Source: Hydrolagus colliei (lineage: Eukaryota). Taken from it: a DNA stretch of 64,000 nt. Numbering within the stretch: the stretch's first letter is position 1; every line of letters begins with the position of its first letter. The DNA is taken from the NCBI GenBank assembly GCA_035084275.1, contig CM068762.1, positions 11,780,001 to 11,844,000 of the forward strand. The letters run 5' to 3'. This document shows positions 2,345 through 64,000 of the stretch, piece by piece. The notes under the pieces are model-generated. The model saw only the letters and a list, made by a program, of their open reading frames with translations. It searched no databases and was not told where the DNA came from. The position numbers and the translations under genes were made by a program.

Positions 2345-4691
2345 CTATTTTTGCACAATTGTCCAAACGCCCCAAAAGAGTAGGATAGCGAGGAAAGCCC
2401 AACGCAATATGCTCCACTTGAAGTAACGAAGAGCTCCTTCCCTGGATAAATAGAAACAAACATGATTTAATAATAATAATAATCCTTGCATTAGATGTAG
2501 CGCTTTTCACATCTTCTAGGCATCTCAAAGCGCTTCACAGATTATACTGTAACGCGAATGGACTGTTTACTTGTGGGCGAAACGCGGCAGCCAATTTCCG
2601 CACAGCGGCGTCCCCAACACAAACAGTGGTGGATTGAAATGGCCAATTTTATTATTATTTTTTTTCCCCCCATGGGATTACTATTAACAGGCGTGTGGGA
2701 GTAAGGAAACTTGCCCAAGGTTTGGCCCTGCCTGCCTGCCTGCCACGGTCTACTTTACAAGGGTGTGTTGGCCGCAGTCTGGTCTTTGAGTCAAAAGGAT
2801 GGTAGGTTTAAAAGCTTCTGTGTCGGGACTTTCATCTCAAGAGTCGAAACCGATGCAAGTTTGGGGGTGGGAGTGGGGTGAGGGAGAGAGGGAGGGAGGT
2901 GGGGAGCGCTGTAAATGTCAGAGGTGCTGTCCCGTGAAGTAGTGCAAATGTAAGTTTACCTTTGTTGGTCATCGTGAGGAGGCCCCGTCTGAGCTCCAAC
3001 TAAACACAATTCGATACGCGAAACAGTTAAAAGGAAGTGAGTGAATCTCTGCCGAGTCAGAACGCAAAGTTCGTCATTGCTCATCAATAATACCAATACA
3101 ATCACAATGAGTCATACCCATTAATGCTCATTAGTGCTCAATAATTATTATTAATTACACCCATCCGTTATTAGTACTATAATAATAATACTCATCGGCC
3201 GCAAAGTTAAACAATGCAAAGCTCTGCCAATAAACGTTAATTCATTCATGGAACTCTCTCTCTCTCTCTCTAAGTAATAATAATAATCCTTGTAATTGTT
3301 ATAGAGCTTTTCACGTTTGTAGACGTCTCAAAGACCTTCACAGAATATACTGTAAAGTGAATTGACTGTATATATTTGTGGGAGAAACGCAGCAGCCAAT
3401 TGCGCACAGCAGCGTCCCCCTACAGATAGTCATGGATTGAGAGACCAAATTATCATTGTTTTTTTTTAGGGATTATTATAAGACGTGTGGAGTAAGGAAA
3501 CTTGCCCTTGTCAGGTTTCGCCCTGACCTGACCTAACCTGACCTGACCTGCCGGGAATTGAACCCAGGTCCCTCGTTGGCGAGACGAGCGCTCTAGTAAG
3601 AAACACGCAGTCAGCGAGACGCACTGGATGGAGATGCAGCTGCTTACCTTTGTACACTATGAGCCAGACCGAGTGTTGTATGTTGAGAATACGAGGGTGT
3701 TCTATGCCACACCAATACCAACCGGCATCGCTCACTGTTAACCTCCTCATTGTCACTGAAAACTCGCCCCTGTGGTTATCCGCCTCCACTGTTATTCTCC
3801 CATCCTCGGTTGTGTTTTCAGGCCCCAGGGTCTGTGCCAAGACATTGCAGTGACTCTTGAAGTGGCCTTTACACCAGTATTTGCCGTACGTGCTGTAAAC
3901 TGTGTCATATTCGCACCTGATCTGCACCTGAGATCCCACCGAACCATTCACTGCCTGCGGTCCACTGATTGCCCTCACAGCTGGGAATAACAATAATATG
4001 ATAATGACTATAATGATCATCCTGGCATTGGATACAGCGCCTTATCACGTTGCTGAGATGTCTTAAAGCATCCACTTGTAAAGTGGAGTGACTGTATGTG
4101 GCGGCTGAAACGCAGCAGCCAATTGCGCACAGCCGGGTCCCGCAAACACTCGTGTATTGAGTGACCAATTTTGTTTTGGGGAGGGATTATTACCTGAAAG
4201 AGACCAACCGATTGACTAACAACAGTGTGGTGCAAATGGCTAGTTGAACAGATTTGTGTGGAGTAGGGAAACTTGCCTCCCCACCCTGGAATCGAACTAG
4301 GGTTCCTCTCGCTTGCAAGGCGAATGCTCTAACCACTGAGCCACTGGTTTCCACATAATTATTCTCTTAATGATTGTTTTCCCATTGCTACTGACTGCCT
4401 GCCTGCCTGCCTGCCTAGTAGCTGGTGGGGAGACCAGACTGAAATTAGCCGACACAAAATATCAGTGATGCTTTGTTTTTTTGCAGGTTATTCGAACTGA
4501 TTTTCTCCTCCTCTCCCACTCAGGCCTCTGCCAGATATCTTCTCTCTATTTCAACCAGCGCAACATTAAGCAAAGCCTCTGTGCGTACATCTCAACCGCC
4601 TGAACATTTATATACTGGGTAACCGTACAAAGGTTAGATTGTTCTTACCTGATGATAAGCAAGTAATGAATACGAACAATGTTAAATCCAT
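2345..4691 (-). CDS. R1: single-V CD300/pIgR-like activating-type receptor, about 170 aa, essentially no cytoplasmic tail (4 exons)
   Basis: Exons: leader 4649-4691 (MDLTLFVFITCLSS, donor G|gtaag), V 3648-3980 (phase 1-1; RCEY..KYWCKG..HC..DAGWYWCGI), stalk 2960-2999 (phase 1-2), TM/stop 2345-2441 (REGALRYFKWSILRWAFLAILLFWGVWTIVQK*). All junctions are GT-AG and the 513 nt join in frame. Confidence 0.82.
3648..3980 (-). CDS. R1 Ig V-domain exon (CD300/pIgR-type, 4 Cys)
   Basis: Lies inside ORF 3511-4020. Has the B-strand Cys, W-C..C extra disulfide and D-x-G-x-Y-W-C. Acceptor ttattcccag, donor AAAG|gtaag. Confidence 0.93.
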
Positions 4692-5739
4692 CTTTTTTTT
4701 GGGGTGGGGGTTCGTTGCTTGTTTAAAAGTCTCTCCCAAGTTTCATAAAGTTGCTGTTAGCTGCAGCGCTCTGTGTGCAATGCTAAGAATTTGCCTGTTC
4801 CTAAAACTCTTGTTTCGTTCATCTGTTTTGCGCAATCGCGGTGACCGACAGTGACCAGTCTGACAATTCTTGTGACTCTCGCACCATCAATTTGAGGAAC
4901 TGGGAGTTTGCCTGGCACACGACTGCTTGGTTTTACAGAAATGGCCTTGCATTCCATCTTGTCCCCACAAGATACCTTCCCCTTTGTAGTAATAATAAAA
5001 GTAATAACAATCCTTGCATTTGATATAGTGCGTTTCACATTTTATCGACGTCTCAAAGCGCTTCACAGAACACATACTGTAAAGTGAATTGACTGTGTAT
5101 TTGTGGGCGAAACAATATGATCAATGCAGCTCTCTATCACAGTTGTTGAGGCGTCTCACAGCGCTTCACAGGATGTACTGCGTATCGTGGATTGACCGCG
5201 CATTTTTGTGGGCAAAAGGCAGCAGCCAATTGGGGATGGAGTGACTCCCTCTTGGAGGCAATGCTGGGGGAGCGAGCGAGCGAGCGAGGGATGGAGGGAG
5301 GGTGGGTTTATTTACCCGTGAAAAGCAATCCGCCAATCGACCAACAATTGGGTTGATACTTACTGCCGGGTAAACTCCCTCCCCACACCCTCACTGTGCC
5401 GCGTGCTTTGCTGGAGACCTATCGCCAGGTCAAGGCCCTGGGCAAGGTTTACTCACAGTTGTCCAGCATTGCCAAGGGTCTGTCGCCAAAGTATGTGTCC
5501 TTGGCTGAACAGCTGCCAACAGACAGGCTACACGGTGACCGTGGGCTCCTCGCCATTTCTCTTGCGCCATCACTGCTACTGTCTGTGTGTCTTTACCTAT
5601 AACAATCCTCGCATTTCAATTCAAGACACTCAGAGTCTACATTCAGGTTTACAAGTCTCTTGTGCTGATTATATGGCTCCACAGAGTTCAGACGCATGAC
5701 ACCGAGTCCCACCATCTGCCTCTCGCCTTATAATAATAA

Positions 5740-12428: not shown

Positions 12429-15400
12429 ATGGACTTCACCTTGATTCTTCTCTTCTCTTCCCTCTCAGGTCAGTCACACCTGGAGCTGAGCAGCCAGATG
12501 TTCCCGTGGTTGGACTGGTTGGCATTTTGAAAGCAGTTGTTAAAAATGCTCTTGTTTTTTCTCTCATTGTCCTCTCTCTCTCTCTGTCTCTGAAAATTTC
12601 TCAACAATTGCAGAACTGTATTGAGATCTCAGTATAAAAAAACACTGTTAAGTTTCATGACTTCCCCTTACTTATTGCAAGAGTCGGATTACCGGCCTGG
12701 AGTCTGCATCTTGTGAATGTTTCAGGCATTCTCAATAAAATGGAGTCCTGTAGCTCAGTGGTTAGTGCTCTAGCCATGCCAGCGAAAGAGCTGGGTTCGA
12801 TTCCAGGCAGGGTGAAACATTGGGCAAGTTTTCGTACTCCAAACGCCTATTAATAATCCGTAAAAAAATACAAATTTGGCCACTCAAATCGCGACTGTTT
12901 GTGGGGACATTGCTGTAATTGGCTGCTGCGTTTCTCCCACAAATATACAGTCAATTCACTTTGCAGTCTATTCTGTGAGGCGCTTTAAGACGTCTAGAAG
13001 ATGTGAAAAGCCCTATATCAAATGCAAGGATTATATTCTTATTCTTATAAAATAGTATTTAGAAGTTGCTTTGCCATGCTTGGTATGAACGCTGTCACTT
13101 TCACTAAATATTCTCAGGATTGGACCAGTTTGAGATCAACGAAAATAAATGTACAAGGCTGAATAAAGAAGAACAAATAAAATTATAGAACCAACTATTT
13201 TTTTTGGAGTTGAGATAACGATCAGACATCATAAAATAGAAAAGCAGAACAGGCTCTGGGTGGGGGTGGGGGTGGGGGGCTGAATTATCTCCTCTTGTTC
13301 CTAATATAAAACAGGAAGAAATATGAAAATTCTTTCTTTTTTTTTAAAAGACCTTCTGGAAAGTCCCAGATTTTGTCATTGACTATTAGAATACCTGCGC
13401 CTTGTGACGTCCTCCTGACGTGATTGGTGTTGTATAAGTGTAATTTTGTTGTTGTTGCATTTGATGTAGTGCCTATCATGTTGTCAGGACGTCTGTCCCA
13501 AAGCTCTCCACAGGATATACGCTAAAGTGGATTGATTGTGTGTTTTGTGGGTGAAACGCGGCAGCCAAATTGGAGAAAAAGAAATAAACTAAAATGATGA
13601 AACAGGAAGAGAGTTTGACGGGGCTCCAGAAATCAGCCTCGGGTGTGGTCATCAGCTCCTCTGTCCCAGACCTGATACAGAACAAACAGCAATAACAGCA
13701 GCGTCCAGCCTCAGTGATCAATGCTTAAACCCCAATCACAATACACCAGCCGTTCAAATGTATGGATAAGAGCAGTGGTGCTCACAGTCTGTACACAGTT
13801 GGGAATCGTTTACTAAAGGAAGTGTTTGTATTGAGCAGTTATGGTTTGTTTCATTGGTGATGTTTTGTCTCTAGTTTCAGATGCAATATGGGGGGAAGCT
13901 GCTGTAACAGGAGTTGTGGGCCGAGCGGTCACAATAAACTGTCACTATGATAAACAGCGGTACCGGTCACACAGGAAATATTGGTGTTGGGGATACTATC
14001 GTGCTAGTTGTGAGGATGTAGTTGATACAAATAAGAAGAATGGACAACAAGGAAGATTCTCAATCACAGATCACACCAGTGACAGGGTATTTACTGTGAC
14101 TATGGAGGATCTCACCACTGGAGATGACGGATGGTATAACTGTGGTATTGATACACCTGGCTATGATCCACTGTTTGTTGTACGACTACACATATCCTAC
14201 GGTAAGCTACCTAAGCTATTGATTCTTATTTTAATGTGTAAAACTGTTACTTGTGAGTCTAACAAGGAAAATACAACGTTTGCAAAAAAGCTGCACATAT
14301 CTGTCCGTACCTTAAACCATTCACTTTAATTTGACTGATTTCATCTGCATCTTTCATTTGACTGTCATGATTTCCTAACTTAAGAAACTCTGTCGCATAT
14401 AACACAAGTCAGACTCCATGAGAAGTCAGTTTGTTATTCTATGACAGTTTTTAATCAGCTCCAATGTAGGAATTAGAATATGTCCGCTGTTGCTGAGCAA
14501 ATCTGAATTGTGTTCTTTGCCTATAAGCAGCTGAGATCACAGCAAAGCCAAAGTCAACCGCACACACTTCAACTACAAGTGACACACAAGACCTCAACAC
14601 GGCAGCTGCAGATGAAAAGCTCAGGTAGGAACAGAACTATTATCCCACGTGTCAGGCCCTGACATGTCATTGTGTCTTGGAGCGACAGACTGAACAGTGA
14701 GGGCAGGGATTCTTCTCATTCATCTCCTTCTAACCCTGTAAACTAACGGACAGGGTGGTCCTAGCTGGCGAAACAGTGAGAAACTTGCCTTTCAATAATT
14801 TCAGTGGTAAGTTAGGTACTTTAAGCTGATTAAACCCCAACAATTAACCCAATGGAGTCCACAAACCTCGGTCCTCACCAAACTGCAGCTCCCACAATTG
14901 TGAAACGAACCCTCCTCTACGTGTTGTAGTTTCGCCAACTTAGCAAAGAGTTGTACTTGACTCGAAAAGCCTTGTCACGTCCTGTTCTCTGCTCTCTAGG
15001 TTGGTGTACATTGTGCTGGGATTGCTGGGGCTGCTGCTGATCGCAGCCATTCTGTCTGTACTTATGCTCAGGAAGCAAAGGAAGAAGCGCGGTGAGTGTC
15101 TGACTCATATTAGGCTTTAATGGTTTATATTGACATTGATACAAATGATTTAATTGGTGTCAATTGGCTGCCCAGTCAATTCACTTCACAGTATATGAAG
15201 GGGTGGAGTCCTGTAGCTCAGTGGTAGGAACACTCGCCTTACAAGTGTGAGACCCATGTTCGAATCCAGACAGGTCAGGGTGAAACCTTTGGCAGGTTTC
15301 CTTACTCCACACACGCTTAGTAATAATCCCTCCAAAAAACATTTGTAATAAATTGATCATTTCAATCTACGACTGTTTGTGGGGATACTGCTGAGCGCAA

Positions 15401-17128
15401 TTGGCTGCTGCGTTTTCCCCACAAATGTACAGTTAATTCACTTAACAGTATATTCTGTGAAGCACTTTGAGATGTCTAGCTGGAAAGCACTCCTGTACAT
15501 TGATTGCAGGATTATTATTAGTATAATGTTTGATGAGATGACATTTTACTTTGGTGGTCACATCAAATCTGCAATGAGATGGCACAAATTCTGCAAGATT
15601 TAATACGAGTCGACAGAATGAAAATATTTAGATTGATCTGTGAGTTAGTGACTAGCGGGCAGTAATTTCACAGGGAGAATAAAGAAAACTTATTCAGTGA
15701 TTATCTGTGGCTTCAACTTTACTTCCAACATGTCAATGATTAGTAGCAGATTGTCAGGAGACACTTGTTGATTCTTGTGAACATTTTCCCTGTCTAGTTG
15801 GCTCACGTGGAGCAGGGAATGGTGATGAGGTAAGAAGCTTAATGTACGCTTCATGACGTTAAGAAAAGTTTAAACTGATGACCTGGGGCCTGTCCTCAGG
15901 TGGATGTTAAAGAGCCACTGATCACAAAGAGACGGGAGTTTCTCCCCATGTTTTGGCCAACAATCCACCAGATTAACTGGCCAGAGACTGCGGGATGGAA
16001 TTCCAGAGGTTGGGGGCAGAGTGGCTAAAGGCTCACCCGCCAATGTTGGGGCGGATGGGTCGGGGGACGTGGAGCAGGCCAGAGCCTGCTGAGCGGAAGG
16101 ACTGAGCAGATTGGTAAGGGGTTAGAAGGTCACAGATGTAGGGTGGGTCGAGGTTGTGGAGGACTGTAAATGTGAAGACCAAGATCTTGAATTGGTCAAG
16201 ATCAATGACCCCTCTGGATGATGGGGAGCCAATAGAGTCGGGTAAGGATGGGGCGATGGGGTCACAGAGTTTAGAACGGTAGAGGACATGGGCCGCAGAG
16301 TTCTGGATAATCTGCAACCTGTGGAGGGAGGAGTTGGGAAGGCTGACAAGCGAGGCATTTCCATAGTCGAGCCGGGATGTAATGAAGGCATGAATGAGGA
16401 TTTCAGCGGCTTTAGGGGGTCAGGTAATGGAGGAGTCATGAAATGTTGCACAGGAGGGAAAAGGCAGAGGTTGCATGTGGGGGAGGTAAGACAGTTGAGG
16501 GTCAAATACCTAGTTCAGACACCGAGGTTCCTGAGGCTCTCGGTGAGGTCGAGTGAGCAATCATGGAAGTTGATGCTGCCAGTGCCTGATGCATAAAGGA
16601 GGGCCTCTGTCTTGTTGATATTCAACTGTAGAAAGTTAGCTCTCATCCAGGACTTCACGTCTAACAGAAAGTCTATCAAGACAGTAGTAGTCCCGGAGTC
16701 GAGGGTAGAAGCAGAGAGATACAGTTGGGTGTCATCATACATGTGAAAGTTAGGCGCGATATCAAACACAAAGTTATTACGAAGCACAAAGCAAATCATG
16801 TCTGAGCATTGTATTGACCCGTGCAATTTAACTCCAGTTTGAAACCAATACAATTTTCGCCATCGTGCAGAAGAGGTCAGCGAGTTCTGTGGCTGGGAGC
16901 AGCGAGGCAGCCACACAGTTATGTACTGGAGATGCCAACATCACGTACGCAGAAGTGGAGTTTGTTCAGAGATCAGCAAAGGCAGAGAGTGGAACCCCAG
17001 CCACGCTCTCATCCAACACTGGCAACAACACCATTTACAGCAACATCATGGCTCAAAATCCACCCTCACAGGACAGGAAGGAAAACCCAGAGTTGAAAGT
17101 GACAGAATATGCCTCAGTTACAAATTAG
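12429..17128 (+). CDS. R2: single-V inhibitory-type CD300-like receptor, about 291 aa
   Basis: Exons: leader 12429-12468 (MDFTLILLFSSLS), V 13875-14201, stalk 14531-14624 (alternative AG 3 nt upstream), TM 15000-15091 (LVYIVLGLLGLLLIAAILSVLMLRKQRKKR), cyt1 15798-15829, cyt2 16838-17128 (ITYAEV, TIYSNI, TEYASV). Phases 1,1,2,1,0 give an open 876-nt CDS. Confidence 0.85.
12742..13045 (+). mobile_element. tRNA-derived SINE (Deu-like core, L2-like tail); representative of dozens of copies in the window
   Basis: A box (tagctcagtggttag), B box (gggttcgattcc), core aattggctgctgcgtttc, tail aaagcgcttt..atcaaatgcaaggatta(tta)n. Confidence 0.85.
13875..14201 (+). CDS. R2 Ig V exon
   Basis: Inside ORF 13841-14329; CHY..KYWCWG..SC..WYNCGI; ctag|tt acceptor and TAC G|gtaag donor. 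Confidence 0.93.
15204..15522 (+). mobile_element. tRNA-derived SINE
   Basis: Full-length copy of the same family. Confidence 0.85.
16000..16745 (-). mobile_element. L2-clade LINE fragment in the R2 cyt1-cyt2 intron
   Basis: Frameshifted QIIQNSAAHVL..FKILVFTF..HNLDPPYICDLLTPY..RS and YDDTQLY RT motifs. Absent from R4 and R5. Confidence 0.82.
16838..17128 (+). CDS. R2 terminal cytoplasmic exon with ITIM/ITSM motifs
   Basis: Acceptor aactccag| in phase 0. Extends ORF 16865-17128 and is paralogous to 30080-30382 and 46634-46936. Confidence 0.85.
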   Translation, partial: FETNTIFAIVQKRSASSVAGSSEAATQLCTGDANITYAEVEFVQRSAKAESGTPATLSSNTGNNTIYSNIMAQNPPSQDRKENPELKVTEYASVTN

Positions 17129-17749
17129 CAGCAAAAATAGTGATGGGGTGATGGGGAGGGGAGGGGGGGGTGTAACCCCTGATATCATAATTTCCACGCT
17201 GGATGATGTGGGGTAGGGGTATCTCACAATGCTGTTATTCCCGTTAGCATTTATTCAGAGGGAATATTTTTGGCTCCAGTAAAATGCGCACGGCTTTACG
17301 CGACAATCGTATTATGTTATTGTTTTGTCGGACGCTCAGAAACGCTGCATTGTTCGCGACCAAACTGTCCACAAAAACAAAGTGTCCCTGAAGGGAAGTC
17401 CTTTGCCTCGCTGACCAGACAGACACAAGCTGCTGGATTTACTTTTGGCTCCAATTAAACAACTCAGGGGATCCGATACCTGTGACCGGCATTGCCTAAT
17501 GTAACGCTGCTCTGAATGTTTACGCCTCTCAATGAGTTAAATAAAAGTCTTCAACTGCCTGACGTTCATTGTTCATTTGCCTGAATATTTGAGGATGAGA
17601 AGCGACCATAAGAGACTGTCCCTGATATTAACTGTCACCTTTCATGTGTTAGTGTTGTTTCCCATTGCGTTGGTTCTGAAGATATAGTTGACACAAATAT
17701 ACACATCTGTTCAATGGACGACTAGAAAGAAGTCAATCATTTACTACAG

Positions 17750-46936: not shown

Positions 46937-49900
46937 TGATGGTGTGTGTGTACATGAGGTGGGGGTGAGGGTGGATGTAACCCATGATGTGCTAATTGTC
47001 ACAAGTTGCAATTTTCACGCCAGATGATGTGAGGCAGCGGTATCCTACAATACTGTTATTCCCGTTAGCATTTATTCAGAGGGAATTTTTTTGGTTCCAG
47101 TAAATTGCGCACAGCTTTACACGACAATCCTTTTATGTTATTGTTTTGTCGGACGCTCAGAAACGCTGCATTATTCGCGACTAAATTGTCCACAAAAAAA
47201 ACTTGTCCATGACAGGAAGTCCTTTGCCTCGTTGACCAGACAGACACAAGCTTCCAGATTTACTCTGGCTCCAATTAAACAACTCCCATATCTGTGACCA
47301 GCATTGCCTAATGTAACACTGCCCTGAATGTTTATGCCTTTTGATGGGTTAAATAAAAGTCTTCAACTGCCCTATCGTTCATTGTTCATTTGCCTGAATA
47401 TTTGGGGATGAGGAGCGACCATAACAGACTGTCCCTGATATTAACTGTAACCTTTCATGTGTTAGTGTTGTTTCCCATTGCGTTGGTTCTGAGGATATAG
47501 TTGACACAAATATACACATCTGTTCAATGGACGACTAGAGACAACAACAACAGCAAGAAAGGAATACCAGTCACTTACAACAATAACAAAATTACATTTG
47601 TAGAGCGCCTTTCGTGTTGGGAGGGGCTAATTAGTTAGCCTTATTACTCTATCATTCATGTGCCTAACCCAACACGGTATTGTATGGATTATGACAAGAG
47701 AGTATAGAGTGTGGTCGGCTCGGCACATGCAACATGACTAATTCTTCGGCTTAACATGTGTCACTCTCACTCACATGTCACAGTCACTCATGAGGACAAA
47801 AGGCCCACTAAAGAGTTTGTGGCTGTCAGGGTGACGGAGTTTATATCGGTGCAGACAGACACTGTATATTTATGAGAATGATCTGCAGAGGAGGAACCAC
47901 TGTTTCGTCAATACACACGGGATTTCAACATCATCAAGTTTGACATAAGTGGGTGGGACTGTATATAAAGTGAAAGATTCTTCTTATTATATATGTCTAT
48001 GTAAGTGTGCGTGTAAATTTGTGCATCTGAAGCAGTATCCCGTCCAGCGCCTTGGGACGTCCTCCTGACATGAAAGCCCCTATACAAATGTAATTTTGTT
48101 GTTATTGTTGTGTGTGTGTGTTTTAATCTGCGTGTATTAACACCTGTGTGTGTGTATTAATATATGTGTGTATATTAATGTGGCTGGGGAAGGATCAAAC
48201 TTCATCTCAAACCTTAAGACATGAGCTTCCTCAAACCCTGGAAGGTTTGAAGAAGATCTTGCAGAGTGCAAATTCTTAAGCAAGTTCTATCTGTCTATCA
48301 GCATTTTTAAAACTGTATATAGACAGAAAGGTTGTTTTTGGTGAGCTTGACTTCCTCTTCCTTTTCCTTTTATCACACAAACTGCCTTTTCAGTAAGAAG
48401 CGCTGAGAGCTGCCACACAACAGACCTTGTTCCCTTCGCTCCTGATGGACTTCACCTTGATTCTTCTCTTCCCTCTCAGGTCAGTCACACCCGGAGCTGA
48501 GCAGCCAGATGTTCCTATGGTTAAGAGAAAGGGAGGGGGGGTGGAGACAGGGCAAGGAAGACATAGGAGAAATTGCGGTAGGGGCCGGAGAGACGGGTTA
48601 ATGAGCTGTTAATGTGGTAAACCAAAGAGTAAATTGCAACAAGACTTGAGAGAAGAGGTGTTAATAATGCTAAAACAAAGGAAAAGTGAAATTGCCCCCA
48701 AAAAACGGCCGATCGGGTATTGGCAGAAGAAGTGGAAGGTGAGCTGATCCATGTGGGATTACTTGATGTTTAAGGCAATTACTCAAGAAAGAAGTATGGC
48801 TATTAAAACGTGTTTTAGTGAACACAACATCTGCCTCTCTGTCTCTCAAACTCCCTCTCTGTCCCATTTGAAAGCGGTTGTTAAAAAATCTTCTTGTTTT
48901 CCCTCTTTCTCGTCGTCTCTCTCTCGCTCTCTCAAAATTTCTCAAGAATGCGGAACAATATTGGCATCTGAGTATCAAAAAAACCTGAAGTTTCATGACT
49001 TCCTGTCTCTGTACTTATTGCCACACTCTCGTAAAAAAAACTACAACTTAGAATAAGTTCGAAGTCAGAAGGCGCTTTGCCATATTTGGTATGAACGCTG
49101 TTGCTATCGCTGAACGTTCTCAGGATTTGACCGGTTTGAAGCTTGGGGTGGTATCTGAAATTGTGTTCTCCTGTTCCTATGTACCACAGGAAGAAATGTA
49201 AAAAATTGTCGTTGGTTTAACTCCTTGTGGAAATTCCCAGATTTTCCCAGAAATTCCCCTATTGTAATAATACTTGCATTTGATGTAGCTCTTCATCAGG
49301 TCATCAGTCTGCCCCAAAGCTCTCCACACGATACACCCTAAAGTGCATTGATTGTGTGTTTTGTGGGAGAAACGCGGCAGCCAAATTGGAGAAGAAGAAA
49401 TGACCGAAAATGATGAAAAAGAGAGTTTGACGGGGCTCCACAAATCAGCCTCGGATGTGGTCATCAGCTCCTCTGTCCCAGACCTGATACAGAACAAACA
49501 GCAATAACAGCAGCGTCCAGCCTCAGTGATCAATGCTTAAACCCCAATCACAATACACCAGCCGTTCAACTGTATGGCTAAGAGCAGTGGTGCTCACAGT
49601 CTGTACACAGTTGGGAATCATTTACTAAAGGAAGTGTTTGTATTGAGCAGTTATGGTTTGTTTCATTGGTGATGTTTTGTCTCTAGTTTCAGATGCAATA
49701 TGGGGGAAAGCTGCTGTGACAGGAGTTGTGGGCGGAGTGACCACAATAGACTGTCACTATGATAAACAGCTGTACCGGTAACACAGCAAATATTGGTGTC
49801 GGGGATGATATCGTGCTAGTTGTGAGGTTGTAGTTGAAACAAACGACAAGAATGGACGACGAGGAATATTCTCAATCACAGATAACACCAGAGACGGGGT

Positions 49901-50139
49901 ATTTACTGTGACTATGGAGGATCTCACCACTGGAGATGCAGGATGGTATAACTGTGGTATTGATACATCTGGCTATGATCCAATGTTTGTTGTACGACTA
50001 CACATATTCTACGGTAAGCTACCTGAGCTATTGATTCTTCTTTTAATGTGTAAAACTGTTACTTGTGAGTCTAACAAGGAAAATACGTTTGCAAAAAAGC
50101 TACACATATCTGACCGTATTTTAAACCATTCAACAACAA

Positions 50140-50690
50140 CAACAAAATTGCACTTATAAATTGCACTTGCCTTTCACATCCAAAGCGCTGAACAGTCAGG
50201 TCGGGACCCAAGCGGGGGGGAGTGGGGGGTGGGAGGGAAGGAAGAGTTAGTGGGGAAGCCGAAGGTGTGGTCCAAGAGGAAGGTCTTGAGACCGGCCTTG
50301 AAGGAGGTAAGGGAGGAAGCGAGGTGGAGGGGCTGCGGGATGGAGTTCCACAGTGTGGGGGCAGAGAGGCTGAAAGCCCAGCCGCCGATGGTTGGGCGGT
50401 TAGGGCTGGTGGACGCGGAGCAGGCCTGAGGCTGCTGAACGGAGGGGACGGGCACAGGCTGATGGGGAGACAGCAGGTCAGAGAGATAGGTGGGGGCAAG
50501 GCCGCGAATGGCCTTGAAAGTATGGACGAGGATCTTGAATTCGATCCTCTGGGGGACAGGGAGCCAGGGTAGATGGGCGAGGGTGGGATTGATATGGCGC
50601 AGAGCCTAGTATGGGAGAGAACACAAGCTGCAGAATTCAGAATGTGCTGCAGCCTGTGAAGGGAGGAGCTGGGGAGGCCGACGAGGATTA
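50140..50690 (-). mobile_element. L2-clade LINE 3' fragment
   Basis: RPTIGGWAFSLSAPTLWNSIP..FKAGLKTFL motif. Confidence 0.78.
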
Positions 50691-51477
50691 ATTCACTTTA
50701 ATTTGACTGATTGACTGACACTTTACAAACACAATGTGTAAACTCAGCACATACCCAGCATATATTAAACTTCTTCAGCTTGGCTCAAGTACTTCAGCTT
50801 GGCTCAGTTTACACCACAGAAAGTTATGATTTCCTCATTTAAGAAGCTCTGTCGCATATAACACAAGTCAGACTCCATGAGAAGTCAGTTCTTTATTCTA
50901 TGACAGCCTGGAAACAAGTCCCAATGCAGGAATTAGAATCTGTCAGCAGTTCTTGAGCAAATCTGAATTGTGTTCTTTGCCTATAAGCAACTGAGATCAC
51001 ATCAAAGCCAAAGTCACCGGCGCATGTTCCAGCTACAAGCAACTCCTCCACTGTCACACAAGTCTCCAACACGGCAACTGTGGGTGAAAAGCTGAGGTAG
51101 GAATGGACTTGTAGTGGTTAGGACATCACAATCATAATTTCTGAGCATCGGTCTAGTGTGAGTGTTGGTGAGTGAGTGTGTGATTGTATGAGTGTTGATG
51201 AGTGTGTGGGTCACCATGTGTGTGTGTATCTGTTGTTACCAATCCATTACTGTGCAGCGCCTTGACACATCCTCCCAAAGTGAAAGATACTTTGCAAGTT
51301 TAACTTGTTGTTGTTCTTGCCTTGCCAGAGAATAGTGTTGCTGCAAATCTCAACACACAAATTTCACCCTGTATATTTCCCAATGGTTCCTCCAATATTC
51401 TCTTTTTAAAAAAGTCAAGATAATGTGAGCATCTCAACGCTCTTCTGCCCACATTGCCCACATTGCTTTGCAATTCT

Positions 51478-51715
51478 TCACTCAGAGGGTAGTGAATTTA
51501 TGGGATTCACTACCCCAGAAGGCTGTAGATGCTCAGTCCTTGAACATTTTCAAGGCTGAGACTGACAGATTTTTAAAATATAGAGGGATTAGGGGATATG
51601 GGGATAGGGCAGGTAATCAGAGTTAGGTCAGAAGATCAGCCATGATCTTATCAAATGGCGGGGCAGGCTCGAGGGGCTGAATGGCCTACTCCTGCTCCTA
51701 ATTCCTGTGTTCTTA
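51478..51715 (+). mobile_element. CR1-like LINE 3' end fragment
   Basis: Similar to the 3' ends of the other CR1 fragments (gatcagccatgatc..gaatggcctactcctgctcc). Confidence 0.65.
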
Positions 51716-53496
51716 AGCTTCAGACTTCATTCTCATCTCACAATCAATACTCTGAACCACTCTTGTGTGTGGCACTCCCAGTGCCCTTTGGTATATCCTG
51801 TTTTCTTCTGATTTTCTCTTTCCTAATTATCACTAACTTCTTACAGCAATAACCCACAAAAGGCATCCCTGAGCCCAACAGTAGGACATTCAGATGAGAT
51901 GAAAGCTGGTCCATAAACCCTAGTTATGCCGCGTTTCTCATGTCTAATTTGCATTTAGACTTTTCTCTAAAACTTCACATAAAACAAAAGTCTAATCCGC
52001 AGCCAAAGGCCAATGTCTGATAGTTTTTGCATTAATGTCACAGTCAGAATGTCGCAAAATAGTGGTGTTTGTCACAATGGAAACTGTCTCTTTTAAGACT
52101 TGACTGTCTTGTTCTGTGTTTTTGCCCAGTTACATCCTGTGGCGCTGGCTACGCTGGGTCCTGTTTGCTGCCCTGCTTATTTCTCTGGTTTTGGGCATTT
52201 ACTGTTCAAAGAAAAGGCACGGTGAGGATTATCTTCTTTTTATTAATGATTAACAATAATCCTTTCTTATTAATCCTTAACATAATACGTTTGATTCAGT
52301 TCAAGGAAGAGTTTGGTACTTTTCTGAGCAATTCAGAAACATCATTAAAGTGAAACCTATTTCTAAATTGATAAGTAAAATGCTCTTTGACTCACAGTCA
52401 CGTCAATATAATCTATGGATTAATTATTTTATTTTTCAGCTCAACCCGAGGAACGCAATAAGAGACTCACTGGGCGTCCAACCTGGAGACCGATGAATCC
52501 AGATCAGGTGGATTTGTGATGTTTATAGCTCAATATGGCATTGAAACATCTCAAAGTGCTTTACTTTTAGGTGTGAAACGCAGCAGCCATTATACACACA
52601 GCAATGTCCCACACACAGCCATCTGCTGGTAAGTAGCTGGAGAATCGTTGACCGGGTCACTGAGAGAAACTGCCTTCTCTTAATGAAAAGATCACCTTTC
52701 ACCTTTAACGTTCACCTCAATAGACAGATGGGACCTCAGCTTAATGTCATTATCCCAAAGCTAACGACAATTCTGAAAATGCAGCTCCCACAATGATAGT
52801 TGAGCTGGAGTCTCAGCCTAGATTATCAACTCAGGTCCTATAGTGAGGTTTGAGCTAATAACCTTCTGACCCACAGACAAGGAAATTGTTGATACTAGAT
52901 ATATATATATCTATATATATATATATATATCTGTATATATGGATTTCATTCCTGGCAGGGCCAAACCTTGGGTAATATGCCTTACTCCACAAGCCTGATA
53001 ATAAGCCCTGCAAGAAAAAATCCAATTATAAATTGGTCATTTCAATCCATGACTGTGTGAGGGTCACCGCTGTGTAGAATTGGACGTCCTCTCGACATGA
53101 AAGGTGCTATACAAATGTAATCTTGTTGTTTTTATTGCCTTGCTTCGCTTGCAAAAATCTAATACCATATATTCTGTGAAGCGCTTTGAGACGTCTAGAA
53201 TATGTGAAATGCCTTATATCAAATGCAAAGATTATTAATAACCAAAAACCAATGGTTCTTCCACTCAATCATTCCTGAAACCTTGAATGTCTTTTCTATG
53301 AATTTCGTACAATAAAAGATACAATGACACCAGAATGGTTGAAATCTATTTATTTGCACTTGTCTGGCCGGCTGCTCCCAAAGTAACAAATCTTACACTA
53401 TTCCCATAACTCACCATCTTTAGGTCAGTCTCTTCATCAAACGTTAAAGGTCACCTTTTTAGTTGATTGGCGGATCACTTTTCCAAGGTTAATAAT

Positions 53497-54703: not shown

Positions 54704-57700
54704 ATGGACTTCACCTTGATTCTTCTCTTCTCTTCCCTCTCAGGTCAGTCACACCCGGAGCTGAGCAGCCAGATGTTCCCATGGTTGGACTGGTTGGCAT
54801 TTTGAAAGCGGTTGTTAAAAATTGAATTATTTCTCTCTCTCTGCGTCTCAAAATTTCTCAATAATTTCAGAATAGTAACTGGAATCTCAGTAAAGGAAAA
54901 TAATGTTAACTTTCCCCTTACTTATTGCCTTACTCTGATTATTAGCCTGAAGTCTGCATCTTGTGAATGTTTCAAGCCTTGTCTGTTTCCCTCTCGACAA
55001 AATACAACTTAGAAGTTGCTTTGCCGGGTTTGGTCAGAACGCTGTTGGTGTCACTGAACATTCTCAGGACGAACAGCCTGAACAGTTTGAGATCAGTCCC
55101 AAATCGAATAAAAAATTAACGTACAAAACTGAATAAAACCAACAAAAAAAAATCAATATAAAACCAACCTGTTTTTTGGGGAGTTGAGGGACAGATCAGT
55201 CATGATCTAATAGAATGGCAGAACAGGCTTCGGAGGCTGAATTACCTCCTCCTGTCCCACAGGAAGAAATGAACAAATTTGTTGTTGGTTTAAACTCCTT
55301 CTAGAAATTCCCAGATTTTCTCCATGACTATTGTAATAATATTGTATTATTCTATTGATGCAGTTATGGTTTGTGTGATTGGTGATGTTCTGTCTGTAGT
55401 TTCAGGAGCATTAATAGCAAAAGCTGCTGTAACAGGAGTTGTGGGTCGAGCGGTCAAGATAGACTGTCACTATGATAAATATTATCAGTTATATTTCAAA
55501 TATTGGTGTCGGGGACGGTATCGCTCCAGTTGTGAGTTACTTATTCAGACAAATGACAACAATGGACGACGAGGAAGATTCTCAATCACAGATAACACCA
55601 GAGATGGGGTATTTACTGTGACTATGAAGGGTCTCACCACTGGAGATGACAGATGGTATTATTGTGGTATTGAAAAGAATGGCTATGATTCAATGTTTGC
55701 TGTAAGACTACACATATCCTACGGTAAGCTATCTGAGCTATTGGTTCTTATTTTAATGTGTAAAACTGTTACTTGTAAGTCTAACATGGAAAATACAACG
55801 TTTGCAAAAAAGCTGCACATATCTGTCCGTACCTTAAACCATTCACTTTAATTTGACTGATTGACTGACACGTTACAAACACAATGTGTAACTCAGCACA
55901 TACCCAGCTCATCAGTACTTCAGCTTGGCTCAGTTTACACCACAGAAAGTTATGATTTCCTACCTTAAGAAGCTCTGTCACATATAACACAAGTCAGACT
56001 CCATGAGAAGTCAGTTGTTTATTCTATGACAGCCTGTAAACAGTCCCAATGCAGGAATTAGAATCTGTCAGCCAGTGACTGATTGTCTCTTTCCCCACAG
56101 AGCCTGTGTCGGTTCCTCAGCTTAGATTCTTATCAGCTCCCAATGCCTCGTGTTCAGGAGGTGATGTCTCCATCTCCTGTAAGTCCATCAGTGGATCCCT
56201 TCCCATTCAGTATCAATGGTACAGAGAGACACAGTCTGGAGCTTCAGTGATCTCTCACAGCAACAAACTAGACATACAATGTGGCTCCATCTCCCAGTCT
56301 CACCAGTGCTACTGCACAGCCTCAAATAACAAAGGAGCACGACGAAGTGAAATGGTTGAAGTCTCAGGTTTACAGTTCCTGAAGGAGACGTGCCGTTACC
56401 TGGTTAGAATCAACAACGTTGGTGAGTACAGTGTTGAACAGAGGATTCAGGAGAAACAAATAATCCATTCAGATGGATTCCCGGTACTAAATGGATGACC
56501 ACTAACCAGTCCATGACAGGGAGGATGTCACAAGGCACTGGATAGATTCAACCAAGCTGAGTGTTGGGATATAGAGGTTGGAGGGGAGGGAGTGAAAATG
56601 GTAGGAGAGGGACCAAAGGCTTGATCGAAGAGAAGGGCCTTGAGGCATCTCTTGATAATTTGGGAGTGAGGCGAAGGGACTGTGGGATAGAGTTCCAAAG
56701 GGTGAGGGTGGGGAGGCGATCATAAGGCAGCAAATGAACAATTTACATGTTGAGTGCGTCAGTACTAATGTCCCTTGCTGACCAGCCCAGTGACAATCAC
56801 AGAGAAAGTGTTGTCTGTTATTTCAAGCCTGAGGTGCAGGTTGGTGCCAGGGTTCTCCTCTGAGCAGCTGTTGAGCAAATCTGAATTGTGTTCTTTCACT
56901 TCAAAGGAAATGAATATTCCTGTCCCAAGATCACAACCGCGCGAATGTCAACTGCACACGCTCCAGCGACAAGCATCTCCTCCACTGTCACACAAGCCTC
57001 CACTGACACACAAGCCTCCACTGACACACAAGCCTCCACTGACACACAAGCCTCCACTGACACACAAGCCTCTAACATGGCAGCTGCAGGTGAAAAGCTC
57101 AGGTAGGAATGGACAGGTAATCGGTAGCAAATCACAGTTACAATTTGTGACCATCCGTCTGGTGTGTGTGTGTGCATGAGTCTGTGTATGTGTGATTGTA
57201 TGAGTGTGTGTGCATGAATGTGTGTGTGTGTGCATGAGTGTTTGTGTATGTATGACTGTATAAGTCTCTTTCCTAATTATTCCTCATTATCGTTAACTTA
57301 TTATAGCAATATCCCACAGAAGATATCCCTGAGCCCAACAGTAGGTCATTCAGATCAGATGAAAGCTGGTCCATAGACCCTGGTTTCTCTTCTCTAAGTT
57401 GCATTTAGACTTTTCTCTGAAGCTTTTCTCTAAAAATGGAGAGTGGGATTGAATTGCTTTTTTCAAATAGCCTGCACAGACTGGATGGGCCAAATGGCCT
57501 CCTTTTGTGCCATAAGAGTCTACTATTCTATGATTCTATTAGACAAACGTCTAATCCACAGGCAAAGGCCAATGTCTGATAGTTTTTGCATTAATGCCAC
57601 AGTCAGAAAGTGGGAAAATTGTGGTGTTTGTCACAATGGAAACTGTCTCTTTTAAGACTTGACTGTTTTGTTCTATGGTTTTGCCCAGTTACATCCTGTG

Positions 57701-58045
57701 GAGCTGGCTACGCTGGGTCCTGTTTGCTGCCCTGCTTATTTCTCTGGTTTTGGGCATTTACTGTTCAAAGAAAAGGCACGGTGAGGATTATCTTCTTTTT
57801 ATTAATGATTAACAATAATCCTTTCTTATTAATCCTTAACATAATAAGTTTCATTCAGTTCAAGGAGGAGTTTGGTACTTTTCTCAGCAATTCAGAAACA
57901 TCATTAAAGTGAAACCTATTTCTAAATTGATAAGTAAAATGCTCTTTGACTCACAGTCACGTCAATATAATCTATGGATTAATTATTTGCTTTTTCAGCT
58001 CAACCCGAGGAACGCAATAAGAGACTCACTGGGCATCCAACCTAG
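54704..58045 (+). CDS. R7: V-C2 activating-type receptor, about 339 aa
   Basis: Exons: leader 54704-54743, V 55400-55723, C2 56101-56421, stalk 56907-57102 (STDTQA repeats), TM 57689-57780 (YILWSWLRWVLFAALLISLVLGIYCSKKRH), tail 57999-58045. The 1020 nt join in frame. Confidence 0.86.
55400..55723 (+). CDS. R7 Ig V exon
   Basis: Inside ORF 55324-55851; canonical splice sites. Confidence 0.92.
56101..56421 (+). CDS. R7 C2-type Ig exon
   Basis: ORF 56106-56498; canonical splice sites. Confidence 0.9.
56981..57070 (+). repeat. Coding 18-bp tandem repeat, 5 units (STVTQA then STDTQA x4)
   Basis: Unit tccactgacacacaagcc within the R7 stalk exon. Confidence 0.95.
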
Positions 58046-58454: not shown

Positions 58455-58485
<31 letters not shown>

Positions 58486-59626: not shown

Positions 59627-62600
59627 ATGGACTTCACCTTGATTCTTCTCATTTCTTCCCTCTCAGGTCAGTCACACCCGGAGCTGAGCAGCCAGATGTT
59701 CCCATGGTTGGACTGGTTGCCATTTTGAAAGCTGTTGGTTTGTTTTCTCTCACATTGTCTGTCTCTCTCTCTCTCTCTCTCTCTACCTCTCAAAATTTCT
59801 CAACAATTTCAGAACAGTATTGGAATCTCTGAAAAGATTTTTTAAAAACAATTTCATGACTTCCCCTAACTCATTGCCACACTCTGATTACCAGTCTGGA
59901 GTCTACATCTTGTGAATGTTTCAAGCCTCCTGTCTCTCTCTCTCTCTCAACAAAATACAACTTAGAAGTTGCTTTGTTAGGTTTGGTCTGAACGCTGTTG
60001 CTGTCACTAAACATTCTCCGGATTGGACCCCCAATCACAATACACCAGCCGTTCAACTGTGTGGATGAGAGCAGTGGTGCTCACAGTCTGTACACAGTTG
60101 GGAATCGTTTACTAAACGAAGGGTTTGTATTGAGCAGTTATGGTTTGTTTGATTGGTGATGTTTTGTCTCTAGTTTCGGACGCATTATGGGCGAAAGCTG
60201 CTGTGACAGGAGTTGTGGGCCGAGCGGTCACAATAGACTGTCACTATGAGAAACAGTGGTACCGGTCACACGGGAAATATTGGTGTTGGGGATGGTATCG
60301 CTCCAGTTGTAAGGTTGTAGTTAATACAAACGACAACAATGGACAACGAGGAAGATTCTCAATCGCAGATAACACCAGTGCCGGGGTATTTACTGTGACT
60401 ATGGAGGATCTCACCACTGGAGATGCAGGATGGTATAACTGTGGTGTTTATTCACTTGTTAAAGGCCCAATGTTTGCTGTAAAACTACAGATATCCTACG
60501 GTAAGCAATCTGAGCTGTTCACTCTAATTTAAAAGTGTAAAACTGTTCCATGTTAGTCAAACAAATAAAATACAAAACCAGAATTCCTGGGAAAATCAGT
60601 AGGTCAGGCAGCAGCCATGGAGGAAAGAAAGTGAGTCAACGTTTCGGGTCCATGACCCTTTGACAGAACTTTGACAGAAGGAAAATTCAATGTTTGCAAA
60701 TACTGTACATTACACATATCTGACCGTACTTTAAACCGTTGACTTTAATTTGACTTATTGACTGACACGTTACAAACACAATGTGTAACTCAGCACATAC
60801 CCAGCTCATCAGTACTTCAGCTTGGCTCAGTTTACACCTCAGAAAGTTATGATTTCCTACCTTAAGAAGCTCTGTCAATACACAAGTCAGACTCCATGAG
60901 AAGTCAGTTGTTTATTCTATGACAGCCTGTAAACAGTCCCAATGCAGGAATTAGAATCTGTCAGCCAGTGACTGATTGTCTCTTTCCCCACAGAACCTGT
61001 GTCGGTTCCTCAGCTTAGATTCTTATCAGCTCCCAATGCCTCGTGTTCAGGGGTTGATGTCTCCATCTCCTGTAAGTCCATCAGTGGATCCCTTCCCATT
61101 CAGTATCAATGGTACAGAGAGACACATTCTGGAGCTTCAGTGATCTCTCACAGCAACAAACTAGACATACAATGTGGCTCCATCTCCCCGTCTCACCAGT
61201 GCTACTGCACAGCCTCAAATAACAAAGGAACACAACAAAGTGAAATGGTTGAAGTCTCAGGTTTACAGTTCCTGAATGAGACATGCCGTTACCTGGTTAG
61301 AATCAACAGCATTGGTGAGTACAGTGTTGAACAGAGGATTCAGGAGAAACAAATAATGTCCATTCAGACTGGATTCTCGGGTGAGTTAATTCAATCAATA
61401 GAGAAATTATCCACACTGCACAAACCCATTGTGTTGTGTCCCTTGTACTAAATGGGTGACCACTAACCAGTCCATGACTGTGAGGGAGGGAGGTAGCGCG
61501 GGCGGGTGGGCAGGGAGAAAAAGGAATAGAAGAGAGGATTTCCTAAGGCACTGCACAGAAACCTGCACAGGCACTGCACAGAAATCTGTTAGTGAATTTC
61601 ACCTGAGCTGGGGGCTGGGCCAAGGCAGGGTGGAGGGCAAGGAGATAAGAGGTTAGGAGGATGACACTAGACCCGATTGAAGAGGAACGTCTTGAGACAT
61701 GCCTTGAAAGAGGCCAACAACAACAAAACAACAACAATTTAAACTTATAAAGCGCCTTTCACGTCGGGAGGACGTCCCAAGGCGCTGCACAGGAGGCGTG
61801 TGACCCGAGCTGGGAGGGGAGAGTTCGGGAAGTGGTGAAACACGAAGGGGAGGTCAAAAAGTTCGGTGGGGAACAAAAGGCACGATCGAAGAGGAAAGTC
61901 TTCAAACCGGCCTTGAAAGAGGAAAGGGAAGAAACGAGATGGAGGGATTGGGGGATGGAATTCCACTGGGTGGGAGCGGAGAAACTGAAGGCCCGGCCTC
62001 CGATGGTGGGGCGGTTCGGGCGGGGGGCTTGGAGCAGGCCAAGTCCAGATGAACAGAGGATCCGGGTGGGCTTATAGGGGGAGAGTAAATCGGTTAAATA
62101 GGGCGGAGCAAGGCCATGTAAGGCCTTGAAGGTGAGGACGAGGTTCTTGAACTCGATCCTCTGGAGGATGGGGAGCCAATGGAGACGGGCGAGGGTGGGG
62201 GTTATGTGGTCGCGGAGGCGGGTGCGGGATAGTACACGGGCTGCAGAGTTTTGGCCAGGGTTGGAGCGAGGCAAACAGACTGTAGGATGGAGTTCCAATG
62301 GGTGAAGATAGGGTAGAGATGGTGGCATGGTAAATTAACAGTATAAATGGTGAGTGCGTCAACACTAATGTCCCCCCGCTGACCAGCCCAGTGACAATCA
62401 CAGAGAAAGTGTTGTCTGTTATTTCAAGCCTGAGGTGCAGGTTGGTGCCAGGGTTCTCCTCTGAGCAGCTGTTGAGCAAATCTGAATTGTGTTCTTTCCC
62501 TTCAAAGGAAATGAATATTTCTGTCCCAAGATCACAACCGCGCCAATGTCAACTGCACACGTTCCAGCGACAACCATCTCCTCCACTGTCACACAAACCT

Positions 62601-64000
62601 CCACAACGCCAGGTGAACCTGAAGACAACAGGTAGGATTGGAACTATCTCTCCGTATGTCAGGCCCTGACATGTCATTATGTCTTGGAGGGGTAGACTGG
62701 ACAGAGAGGGCAAGGATTATTCTCATTAATCTCCTTTTAACCTTGTAAACTAACGGGTAGGGTGGTCCTAGCTCGAGAAATAATCATTTCAGTCATAAAT
62801 TAGCCACTGAAAGCTGATTAAACCGCACAATTTACTGAATGTAGCCCATAAACCTTGGCCCTCACCAAACTGCAGCTCACGCAATTGCAAAGCGAGCCCT
62901 CGTCTACGTGTTATAGTTTTGCAAACTTTGCAAAGAGGTGTAAGTGTGTCGAGAAGCCTTGTCACTTCTTGTTGTCTGCTCTGTAGGTTGGTGTACATTG
63001 TGCTGGGATTGCTGGGGCTGCTGCTGATCGCAGTCATTCTGTCTGTACTTGTGTTCAGGGAGCAAAGGAAGAAGCGCGGTGAGTGTCTGACTCATTAGGA
63101 TTCAATGGTTTATATTGACATTTATATACGTTATTCCACACCGTGCCCAGTCATTTCACTCCACAGAATATTCTGTGGGACGTTTTGAGGCGTCTCGAAG
63201 ACGTGATAAGGAGCTATATTTGGAATCCTGTAGCTCAGTGGTTAGAGCACTCGCCTTGAAAGTGAGAGAAATGGATTCGATATTAGGCAGGGTGCAACCT
63301 TGCGCGAGATTGCTTATCTCACACGTCTGATAATTTGTTTTTTTAATCCACGACTGTTTATGTGATGCTGCAGTGAACAAATGGGCGCCACATTTCGCCC
63401 ACAAACATACGGTTAATTCAGGTGACAGCATATTCTAAGAAGCGCTTTGAGATATCTAGAAGACATGAAAAATGCTACATCAAATGCAAGGATTATTATT
63501 ACTACAATGTTTGATGAGATGACTTTCCACTTTAGTGGTCACATGAAATCTACAGTGACATGGTGCAAATTTAGAAATTTGATAAGAGTCGATAGGTTGA
63601 AATTATTTGGATTGAACAGTGAGTTAGTGACTAGAGGGCAGTAATTCCAGATAGTTAACAAAAGAAGGAGAATAAAGGAAAGTTATTACACAGAGTTATT
63701 AGACAGGATGTGGAATGCCTCTCTGGGCAGTGGTCGAGACAGGATCTATATTAGATTACAGGAGGGTGTTAGACAACTGTCTGAAGAGCAATAAGTGGCA
63801 GGAGTTTGGGAAAAAGGAAACTGAACAGATTGCTCTGTCAATGAGCCAGCACAGACACAATGGGCCAAATTGCCTTTTTCTGTACTGTATATTTCAGTGA
63901 TTTTCTGTGGCTTTAACTTTACTTCCAACATGTCAATGATTAGTAGCAGATTGTCAGGAGACAGTTGTTGATTCTTGTGAACATTTTCCCTCTGTCTAAG
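59627..64000 (+). CDS. R8: V-C2 inhibitory-type receptor, 3' part outside the window
   Basis: Exons: leader 59627-59666, V 60174-60500, C2 60994-61314, stalk 62508-62631, TM 62987-63078. The window ends exactly at the cyt1 acceptor (tttccctctgtctaag), matching R4 and R5. Confidence 0.83.
60174..60500 (+). CDS. R8 Ig V exon
   Basis: Inside ORF 60140-60532; canonical splice sites. Confidence 0.92.
60578..60680 (-). mobile_element. Short retroposon tail fragment resembling the shark HE1 SINE/HER1 LINE 3' end (second copy at about 25060-25175, +)
   Basis: gaaggg..gacccgaaac..gctgcctgacctgctga motif; inserted relative to paralogous introns. The family assignment is from memory. Confidence 0.45.
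60994..61314 (+). CDS. R8 C2-type Ig exon
   Basis: ORF 60999-61451; canonical splice sites. Confidence 0.9.
61730..62330 (-). mobile_element. L2-clade LINE 3' fragment in the R8 C2-stalk intron
   Basis: ORF 61759-62328: QNSAARVL..HITPTLARLHWLP..APTQWNSIP. Confidence 0.85.
63220..63503 (+). mobile_element. tRNA-derived SINE
   Basis: Full-length copy. Confidence 0.8.

Follow-up and report, generated by a model that had tools for sequence, protein, structure and literature searches.

What does the 64,000-nt stretch of Hydrolagus colliei DNA analysed here (GCA_035084275.1, contig CM068762.1, 11,780,001 to 11,844,000 of the forward strand; hereafter the window) encode, and do its genes combine related ectodomains with opposing signalling tails, as an initial annotation proposed? 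The cluster consists of eight loci, R1 to R8, built from leader, CD300/pIgR-type V, C2, stalk, transmembrane (TM) and tail exons. With good confidence, we read it as a tandem and inverted paired-immunoreceptor cluster in which ectodomain cassettes are joined to either of two unrelated 3' modules. Each cassette would comprise a leader and a V, then V-C2 units (none, one or two, the C2 being FCRL5-type) and finally a Ser/Thr-rich stalk.

Exon copies were located by six-frame reading together with tblastn and blastn self-searches of the window, and every homologous exon was placed to the base using the R5 exons plus 25-nt flanks as probes. Gene models are the mapped exons concatenated gene by gene, with frames read through. 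The self-search returned nine V exons, six C2 exons, four uncharged TM exons (TMi), three Arg-containing TM exons (TMa) plus the divergent one of R1, and three tail exons carrying an immunoreceptor tyrosine-based inhibitory motif (ITIM). Leader exons of the R2-R8 type number eight, an orphan copy included, and the R1 leader is separate in type. All junctions are GT-AG with the frame maintained at each, and canonical splice sites with intact frames were found in 7/8 loci. Because copies are 81–99% identical and keep open frames over 4–8 exons per gene, the cluster is not a product of chance. The eight related loci and their architectures, as initially annotated, were borne out nearly to the base by the exon mapping and open frames (CY1, a small additional cytoplasmic exon between TM and tail of inhibitory genes; CY2, the inhibitory tail exon):

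2345..4691, minus strand: R1, single V, Arg in TM, 170 aa; leader 4691-4649 (MDLTLFVFITCLSS), V 3980-3648, stalk 2999-2960, TM plus stop 2441-2345 (ending ...YFKWSILRWAFLAILLFWGVWTIVQK and stop)
12429..17140, plus strand: R2, V-only, inhibitory; leader 12429-12468, V 13875-14201, stalk 14528-14624, TMi 15000-15091, CY1 15798-15829 (32 nt), CY2 16838-17140
19926..19960, minus strand: orphan leader exon relic, ATT for ATG, 5-nt deletion
21463..27354, minus strand: R3, V-C2-V-C2, activating, one 534-aa open frame; leader 27354-27315, V 26252-25926, C2 25643-25317, V 24435-24109, C2 23731-23411, stalk 22781-22658, TMa 21817-21726, last exon 21509-21463
30080..34771, minus strand: R4, V-C2, inhibitory, 430-aa open frame; leader 34771-34732, V 33423-33097, C2 32817-32494, stalk 31942-31801, TMi 31572-31481, CY1 30749-30685, CY2 30382-30080
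40542..46936, plus strand: R5, V-C2, inhibitory, 421-aa open frame; leader 40542-40581, V 41497-41823, C2 43201-43521, stalk 44404-44521, TMi 45178-45269, CY1 46257-46321, CY2 46634-46936
48445..52519, plus strand: R6, pseudogene with V-only plus activating layout; leader 48445-48479 (5-nt deletion), V 49687-50013 (two in-frame stops), stalk 50988-51096, TMa 52130-52221, last exon 52440-52519; one codon lost after VVG
54704..58045, plus strand: R7, V-C2, activating, 339-aa open frame; leader 54704-54743, V 55400-55723, C2 56101-56421, stalk 56907-57102 (TQASTD x5), TMa 57689-57780 (YILWSWLRWVLFAALLISLVLGIYCSKKRH), last exon 57999-58045 (AQPEERNKRLTGHPT and stop)
59627..63078, plus strand: R8, V-C2, uncharged (inhibitory-type) TM, with the cytoplasmic exons past the window end; leader 59627-59666, V 60174-60500, C2 60994-61314, stalk 62508-62631, TMi 62987-63078

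In genes of the R2-R8 type, the leader exon is 40 nt and exits in phase 1, followed by a V exon of 327 nt (phase 1-1), C2 exons of 321–327 nt (phase 1-1) and a stalk exon of 97–196 nt (phase 1-2). TM exons of both types in R2-R8 measure exactly 92 nt, in phase 2-1 and with AG/GT at both ends of all copies, as had been proposed. CY1 spans 65 nt (phase 1-0), that of R2 being 33 nt shorter and in frame, and CY2 spans 303 nt; activating genes carry a separate short last exon encoding AQPEERNKRLTGHPT and a stop. The leader peptide of this type is MDFTLILLFSSLS, its exon lying ∼0.5–1.4 kb upstream of V, where it was located via the C. milii N-terminus. Placement of the leader within the conserved 230 nt directly upstream of the V exon was rejected, the stretch being intron, as was direct splicing of TM to tail, which yields a stop; the small CY1 exon was found instead. 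A single gene alternatively spliced to both TM types was likewise discarded, as each gene has a single downstream 3' module.

The V domain matches Pfam V-set (E = 2e-13 and 3e-16), and its PDB matches comprise all five pIgR domains, followed by CD300f, CD300a, TREM2, NKp44 and TIM proteins. All four cysteines align with pIgR D1, a second pair (...KYWC...C...) being present besides the canonical one, and on a single-domain basis CD300f and CD300a match best (73 bits for CD300f vs about 36–40 for pIgR D1). By these similarities the domain is classed as a CD300/pIgR/TREM-type V-set, in agreement with the four-cysteine type named in the initial annotation. The C2 domain scores under Pfam cut-offs, matches the repeated FCRL5 domains in the PDB (9loc, whole-chain E = 4.8e-29) and has in common with them the motifs PVSxPxL, GSLPI.Y..Y and YYCTA.N.G. 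We add to the earlier description that C2 is, on this comparison, FCRL5-type.

Two signalling modules follow the stalk. The inhibitory module, carried by R2, R4 and R5, combines an uncharged TM with a tail bearing one ITIM (ITYAEV) and two TxYxx[IV] motifs resembling the immunoreceptor tyrosine-based switch motif (ITSM); the motifs are ITYAEV, TIYSNI and TEYASV in R2 and TTYANV, ITYAEV and TEYATV in R4. In the activating module of R3, R6 and R7, an Arg lies about one third into the TM and is followed by a motif-free tail of ∼20 residues. Within one cluster, related ectodomains thus sit either on an ITIM tail or on a charged TM with a short tail, which makes this a paired activating/inhibitory family.

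No nucleotide similarity between TMa and TMi was detected (29/92 positions match, shuffled-sequence p = 0.15). Homology of the two is therefore not supported, the match being no better than that of shuffled sequence, and their equal length is not evidence of common descent. Nor, given this lack of detectable similarity, does the activating form look like a recently truncated inhibitory gene. The proposal that the equally long TM exons can be swapped stands as far as phase is concerned: what permits exchange is phase compatibility, not equal length.

The central claim, that ectodomains and tails are mixed combinatorially, is supported by exon identities, which cut across tail types, and by breakpoints and the V tree. 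V identity is 98% between R3a (activating) and R5 (inhibitory), C2 identity is 99% between R3b (activating) and both R4 and R5 (inhibitory), and stalk identity is 92% between R3 (activating) and R8 (inhibitory), ungapped, and again 92% between R7 (activating) and R4 (inhibitory). R2 (inhibitory) and R6 (activating), both V-only, have in common a variant stalk acceptor, through which the (H/N)EY(S/F)CP peptide is lost. Homology between activating and inhibitory genes ends 6–40 nt 3' of the stalk donor, and beyond this point introns and exons are type-specific. The activating module is 94–96% identical among R3, R6 and R7 over 0.5–0.8 kb or more (up to 1.5 kb for R6-R7), although their stalks are only 72–85% identical. 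In the V tree, for Mobula, Pristis, C. milii and the window alike, the activating and inhibitory V domains pair as sisters or nearest neighbours, and V domains otherwise cluster by species. The nearest relative of an activating ectodomain in these alignments is an inhibitory one, here and in three other species.

Exchange of 3' modules in the stalk-TM intron and gene conversion of ectodomains could both contribute to this pattern, and we favour a mixture of the two. Conversion by itself, with ectodomain exons homogenised among neighbours and each tail kept since an old duplication and never swapped, is a real possibility, but one we judge less than probable. It would account for C2 exons that are 96–99% identical (the membrane-distal copy of R3 aside), with a synonymous divergence (dS) of 0–0.04, in the same genes in which V dS reaches 0.27, for the grouping of V domains by species, and for a 97%-identical tract of 809 nt between R7 and R3b that has one boundary inside the V exon. 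The boundary shared by the genes 6–40 nt past the stalk donor agrees with both models. Conversion alone is a less simple explanation than recombination in the stalk-TM intron for two further features: V, V-C2 and V-C2-V-C2 architectures each occur with different tails, and stalk subtypes (GEKL-type end, KDN/EDN-type end, variant acceptor) are each found with both tail types.

R7 differs from the other copies mainly in V (dS ∼0.26 vs 0–0.03 for its C2), with differences concentrated in codons of the presumed complementarity-determining region 1 (CDR1)/C-C' and F-G loops. Aligned with R3b (55400-56464 against 24435-23368), it is a mosaic: V stretches 55450-55549 and 55650-55699 are only 70–80% identical, whereas from 55700 through the C2 exon identity is 96–100%. 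The membrane-distal C2 of R3 (25317-25643, minus strand) is 86–87% identical to the other C2 exons, and its C-terminal part resembles C. milii C2 domains more.

Unequal crossing-over or gene conversion within the cluster would keep re-pairing or homogenising ectodomains across tail types, while V-loop codons would diverge. If they behave like other paired receptors, the ITIM/ITSM forms may recruit SH2 phosphatases, and the Arg-TM forms may signal via an Asp-bearing adaptor with an immunoreceptor tyrosine-based activation motif (DAP12-, FcR-gamma- or CD3-zeta-like). Both forms would then set opposing thresholds on leukocytes for the same or similar ligands.

Several points weigh against this reading. 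Tail exon shuffling and ectodomain gene conversion predict the same pattern; the splicing of R2-R8 rests on C. milii models, which are automatic predictions; the decay of R6 shows that activating copies can become pseudogenes; and affiliation with the skate MDIR receptors, discussed below, fits by published description and not by MDIR sequence. One paper reports that no FcR-gamma homologue turned up in sharks (PMC4016189), which bears on the partner of the Arg. Pairwise ratios of nonsynonymous to synonymous divergence (dN/dS) in V, ∼0.65–3, come from few substitutions and have no significance attached; they fit relaxed or diversifying selection on V. The initial description of the system as fast-evolving therefore suits parts of V, including the R7 loops, but not C2, TM and tails, which are nearly uniform within the cluster.

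Gene models from other species bear on both the modules and their junctions. The best database matches are Callorhinchus milii proteins (64–65% identity); next come numerous models from sharks and rays that bear the names pIgR-like, Fc receptor-like 5 or CMRF35-like. Window and C. milii DNA are ∼78% identical, introns included, in line with the chondrichthyan origin initially suggested; this level most probably reflects two different holocephalans, less probably a divergent paralogous cluster. R5 matches C. milii LOC103182453 at 65% identity over 99% of its length. That gene has the same order of leader, V, C2, stalk, TM, RTVGSRGAGNGDE and ITIM tail, and in both the CY1 peptide RTVGSRGAGNGDE continues into the tail as LE(S/T)N. 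The last 60 residues of R7, used as query, found C. milii 'CMRF35-like molecule 2' (P0037), which is 71% identical to the R7 TM and last exon. This protein ends SYTLWSWLRWVLFAVLLISLISAIYCSKKRH-AEPEQHHKILTGHPTW... and therefore uses the proposed Arg-TM and last exon; its gene adjoins a V-C2-V-C2 ITIM gene on the same scaffold. Between them, C. milii models cover the TMa to last-exon junction (P0037) and the TMi, CY1 and CY2 junctions (P0006).

The Arg-TM motif W..(L/G)RW(V/L)LFALL occurs in chimaera, shark and ray models of 220–744 aa. In Heptranchias, Mobula, Pristis and Hemitrygon, Arg-TM models are found beside ITIM forms of the same species; Mobula P0012 is V-C2-V-C2 ending in Arg-TM and Heptranchias P0005 combines two V domains with Arg-TM, both comparable to R3. 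A Rhinoraja longicauda homologue is 54% identical over the V-C2 part. Both signalling modules are, by these models, recurrent across chimaeras, sharks and rays. The expectation that the activating half would be missed by annotation was thus mistaken: NCBI models of C. milii and of the four shark and ray genera carry the same Arg-TM, so that both halves are already present, under misleading names (pIgR-like, FcRL5, CMRF35-like). As a name, NCBI's 'pIgR-like' describes just the V domain. One C. milii model, P0001 (L001, MU249850.1, 1853896-1878172), reads through the first C2 donor and has a mid-protein leader-like peptide (MRAATQQTL...MDISLILLF); automatic annotation may have fused two adjacent units here.

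Direct evidence of splicing came from R1. In a full HMMER scan against representative proteins, R1 matched a 170-aa protein at 94% identity, which is encoded by Logan contig SRR6291258_32503 (976 nt, run SRR6291258). The contig aligns with the window in four blocks at 96–98% identity (4773-4649, 3983-3648, 3001-2955 and 2443-1964), which coincide exactly with the R1 leader, V, 40-nt stalk and TM exons. It is a spliced transcript from a close relative and the only direct splice evidence of this analysis; another contig, ERR6050737_398197, was rejected as such evidence because it is genomic. The junctions initially listed are accordingly seen in RNA for R1, with all four exons in one spliced contig, whereas those of R2-R8 are supported via orthologous gene models. 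R1 is otherwise divergent. Its V is only ∼41% identical to the other V domains of the window and is matched by a Leucoraja pIgR-like protein, and annotated genes of the R1 type exist in Mustelus asterias and Narcine bancroftii. Its TM YFKWSILRWAFLAILLFWGVW and the R3/R6/R7 TM YILWSWLRWVLFAALLISLVLGIY have the common core WS.LRW...A.LL. Position 2345 is the final base of the R1 stop codon (2347-2345).

Activating tails differ in length among copies. R3 and R7 stop at TAG (21463-21465 and 58043-58045; TGHPT and stop), at a codon that is TGG in R6 (52485-52487) and encodes Trp in C. milii. The latter two read on (TGRPTW...), to ...TGRPTWRPMNPDQVDL and a stop, and the activating tail is therefore ∼11 residues shorter in both intact genes.

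These stops, together with the clear pseudogene R6, could suggest that R3/R6/R7-type Arg-TM genes in Hydrolagus colliei are functionless, decaying by-products of duplication, and the RNA support in this analysis does not cover R3 or R7. We nevertheless consider this improbable, since R3 (8 exons) and R7 (6 exons) retain their open frames and every splice site, chimaeras, sharks and rays have the TM motif in common, and a close relative transcribes and splices the related R1 type. That the mixing is an assembly artefact, from collapsed or chimeric joins of near-identical copies, is highly improbable: copies are indeed 90–99% identical over kilobases and the window has one N gap (1539-1744), but that single gap falls outside all genes, each copy is distinguished by substitutions, intron lengths and repeat insertions of its own, and the independent C. 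milii assembly also has adjoining activating and inhibitory genes with nearly identical V.

How, then, does the cluster relate to known receptor systems? In a 2006 abstract, skate MDIRs reportedly have variable Ig domain number, secreted forms and some similarity to FcR homologues. According to PMC3031540, which cites the 2006 paper (Immunogenetics 58:362), they are a chondrichthyan multigene family of activating and inhibitory immunoglobulin-superfamily (IgSF) receptors, a description with which the initially noted likeness agrees. The window likewise has activating and inhibitory IgSF forms, with one, two and four Ig domains; no secreted form was seen among the window loci. Among the database matches none is named MDIR, and the comparison is by description only. 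The cluster fits that description and is filed with this known family type. Beyond the description given in PMC3031540, the present analysis provides the genomic layout, exon phases, a sharp module boundary and holocephalan members. It yields a base-level map of a chondrichthyan paired-receptor cluster in which cassette and module meet just past the stalk exon.

The cluster resembles CD300 in its four-cysteine V type and in having ITIM members beside charged-TM members in one cluster. A mammalian CD300 protein has a single V and lacks C2, whereas the window genes alternate V with FCRL-type C2, up to four domains, and their charged residue is an Arg in a conserved WxxLRW motif. The C2 domain has motifs in common with the repeated FCRL5 domains, but a CD300-type V opens every gene and C2 is missing from two of them, so that the relation to FCRL is at domain level only. 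All five pIgR domains can be aligned with V, yet V alternates with C2, and the tails are either ITIM/ITSM-bearing or very short, which sets these genes apart from pIgR. Neither FCRL nor pIgR combines V and C2 types as the window genes do. Because the domain combination differs, the family is, on predicted domain content, not a strict member of CD300, FCRL or pIgR.

Near-identical ectodomains on ITIM tails or charged TMs are also found in KIR, LILR/PIR, SIRP and the teleost NITR, LITR and NILT families, whose domain types differ from those seen here. Paired-receptor clusters evolve by duplication, conversion and pseudogenisation. For the NILT cluster, evolution by these processes has been described (bioRxiv 10.1101/2022.04.21.489081). 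In the present family, both the Arg-TM and the ITIM module reappear in models from chimaeras, sharks and rays, with V apparently re-paired or homogenised repeatedly within species.

According to a 2014 survey (PMC4016189) and a 2026 review (PMC13337447), cartilaginous fish have no pIgR, FcRL or classical Fc receptors. The former adds FcR-gamma to the list, and the latter asks how these animals manage Fc-dependent phagocytosis and Ig transport into secretions. At domain level this absence does not hold, judging from the predicted domains: genes with a pIgR/CD300-type V and an FCRL5-type C2 occur throughout cartilaginous fish and are concrete candidate Ig receptors. We regard it as a speculative, rather unlikely idea that the V+C2 family is the Fc-/poly-Ig-receptor equivalent of cartilaginous fish, or reflects an ancestral locus from before the CD300/pIgR and FCRL lineages separated. 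Were it such an equivalent, some members would bind shark IgM, IgW or IgNAR.

In layout, the cluster forms two opposed blocks, a minus-strand one of R4, R3 and the orphan leader and a plus-strand one of R5-R8. R4 (29500-35000, minus strand) and R5 (40300-47500, plus strand) stand head to head and are 76–98% identical from leader to 3' flank. R5 45053-46256 aligns with 62862-64000, and as the alignment reaches 64000, CY1 of R8 would start just past that base. Exon mapping of the window placed neither a leader nor a TM exon between the V-C2 units of R3, and it found no V, C2 or TM exon downstream of the orphan leader (19960-19926) on its strand. This leader sits just downstream of the R3 3' end, facing the R2 3' end, and is probably all that is left of another minus-strand gene, which disappeared at a rearrangement.

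Repeats are found in and around the genes. The R7 stalk contains an 18-nt unit, CCTCCACTGACACACAAG, in 5.2 copies with 98% identity (56979-57072), which encodes TQASTD x5, and the R4 stalk has two copies of the same unit (31832-31867); stalk length thus varies with the copy number of this coding minisatellite. Large intergenic open reading frames were rejected as genes because they are repeat-derived, with a below-threshold reverse transcriptase as their sole Pfam match; a reverse-transcriptase fragment of a long interspersed element (LINE) lies at 17923-18372 on the minus strand (RVT_1, E = 2.6e-5, under the Pfam cut-off). Rfam tRNA matches (4285-4343, 5974-6038, 31252-31323, 45428-45497, 54505-54576, 59428-59499 and 63224-63285) fall inside a multi-copy window repeat and are probably heads of tRNA-derived short interspersed elements, one of them in the R5 TM-CY1 intron. 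The V-C2 intron of R5 measures 1377 nt vs 279–493 nt in the other copies, and a LINE-like insert at 42000-42750 appears to explain much of the difference.

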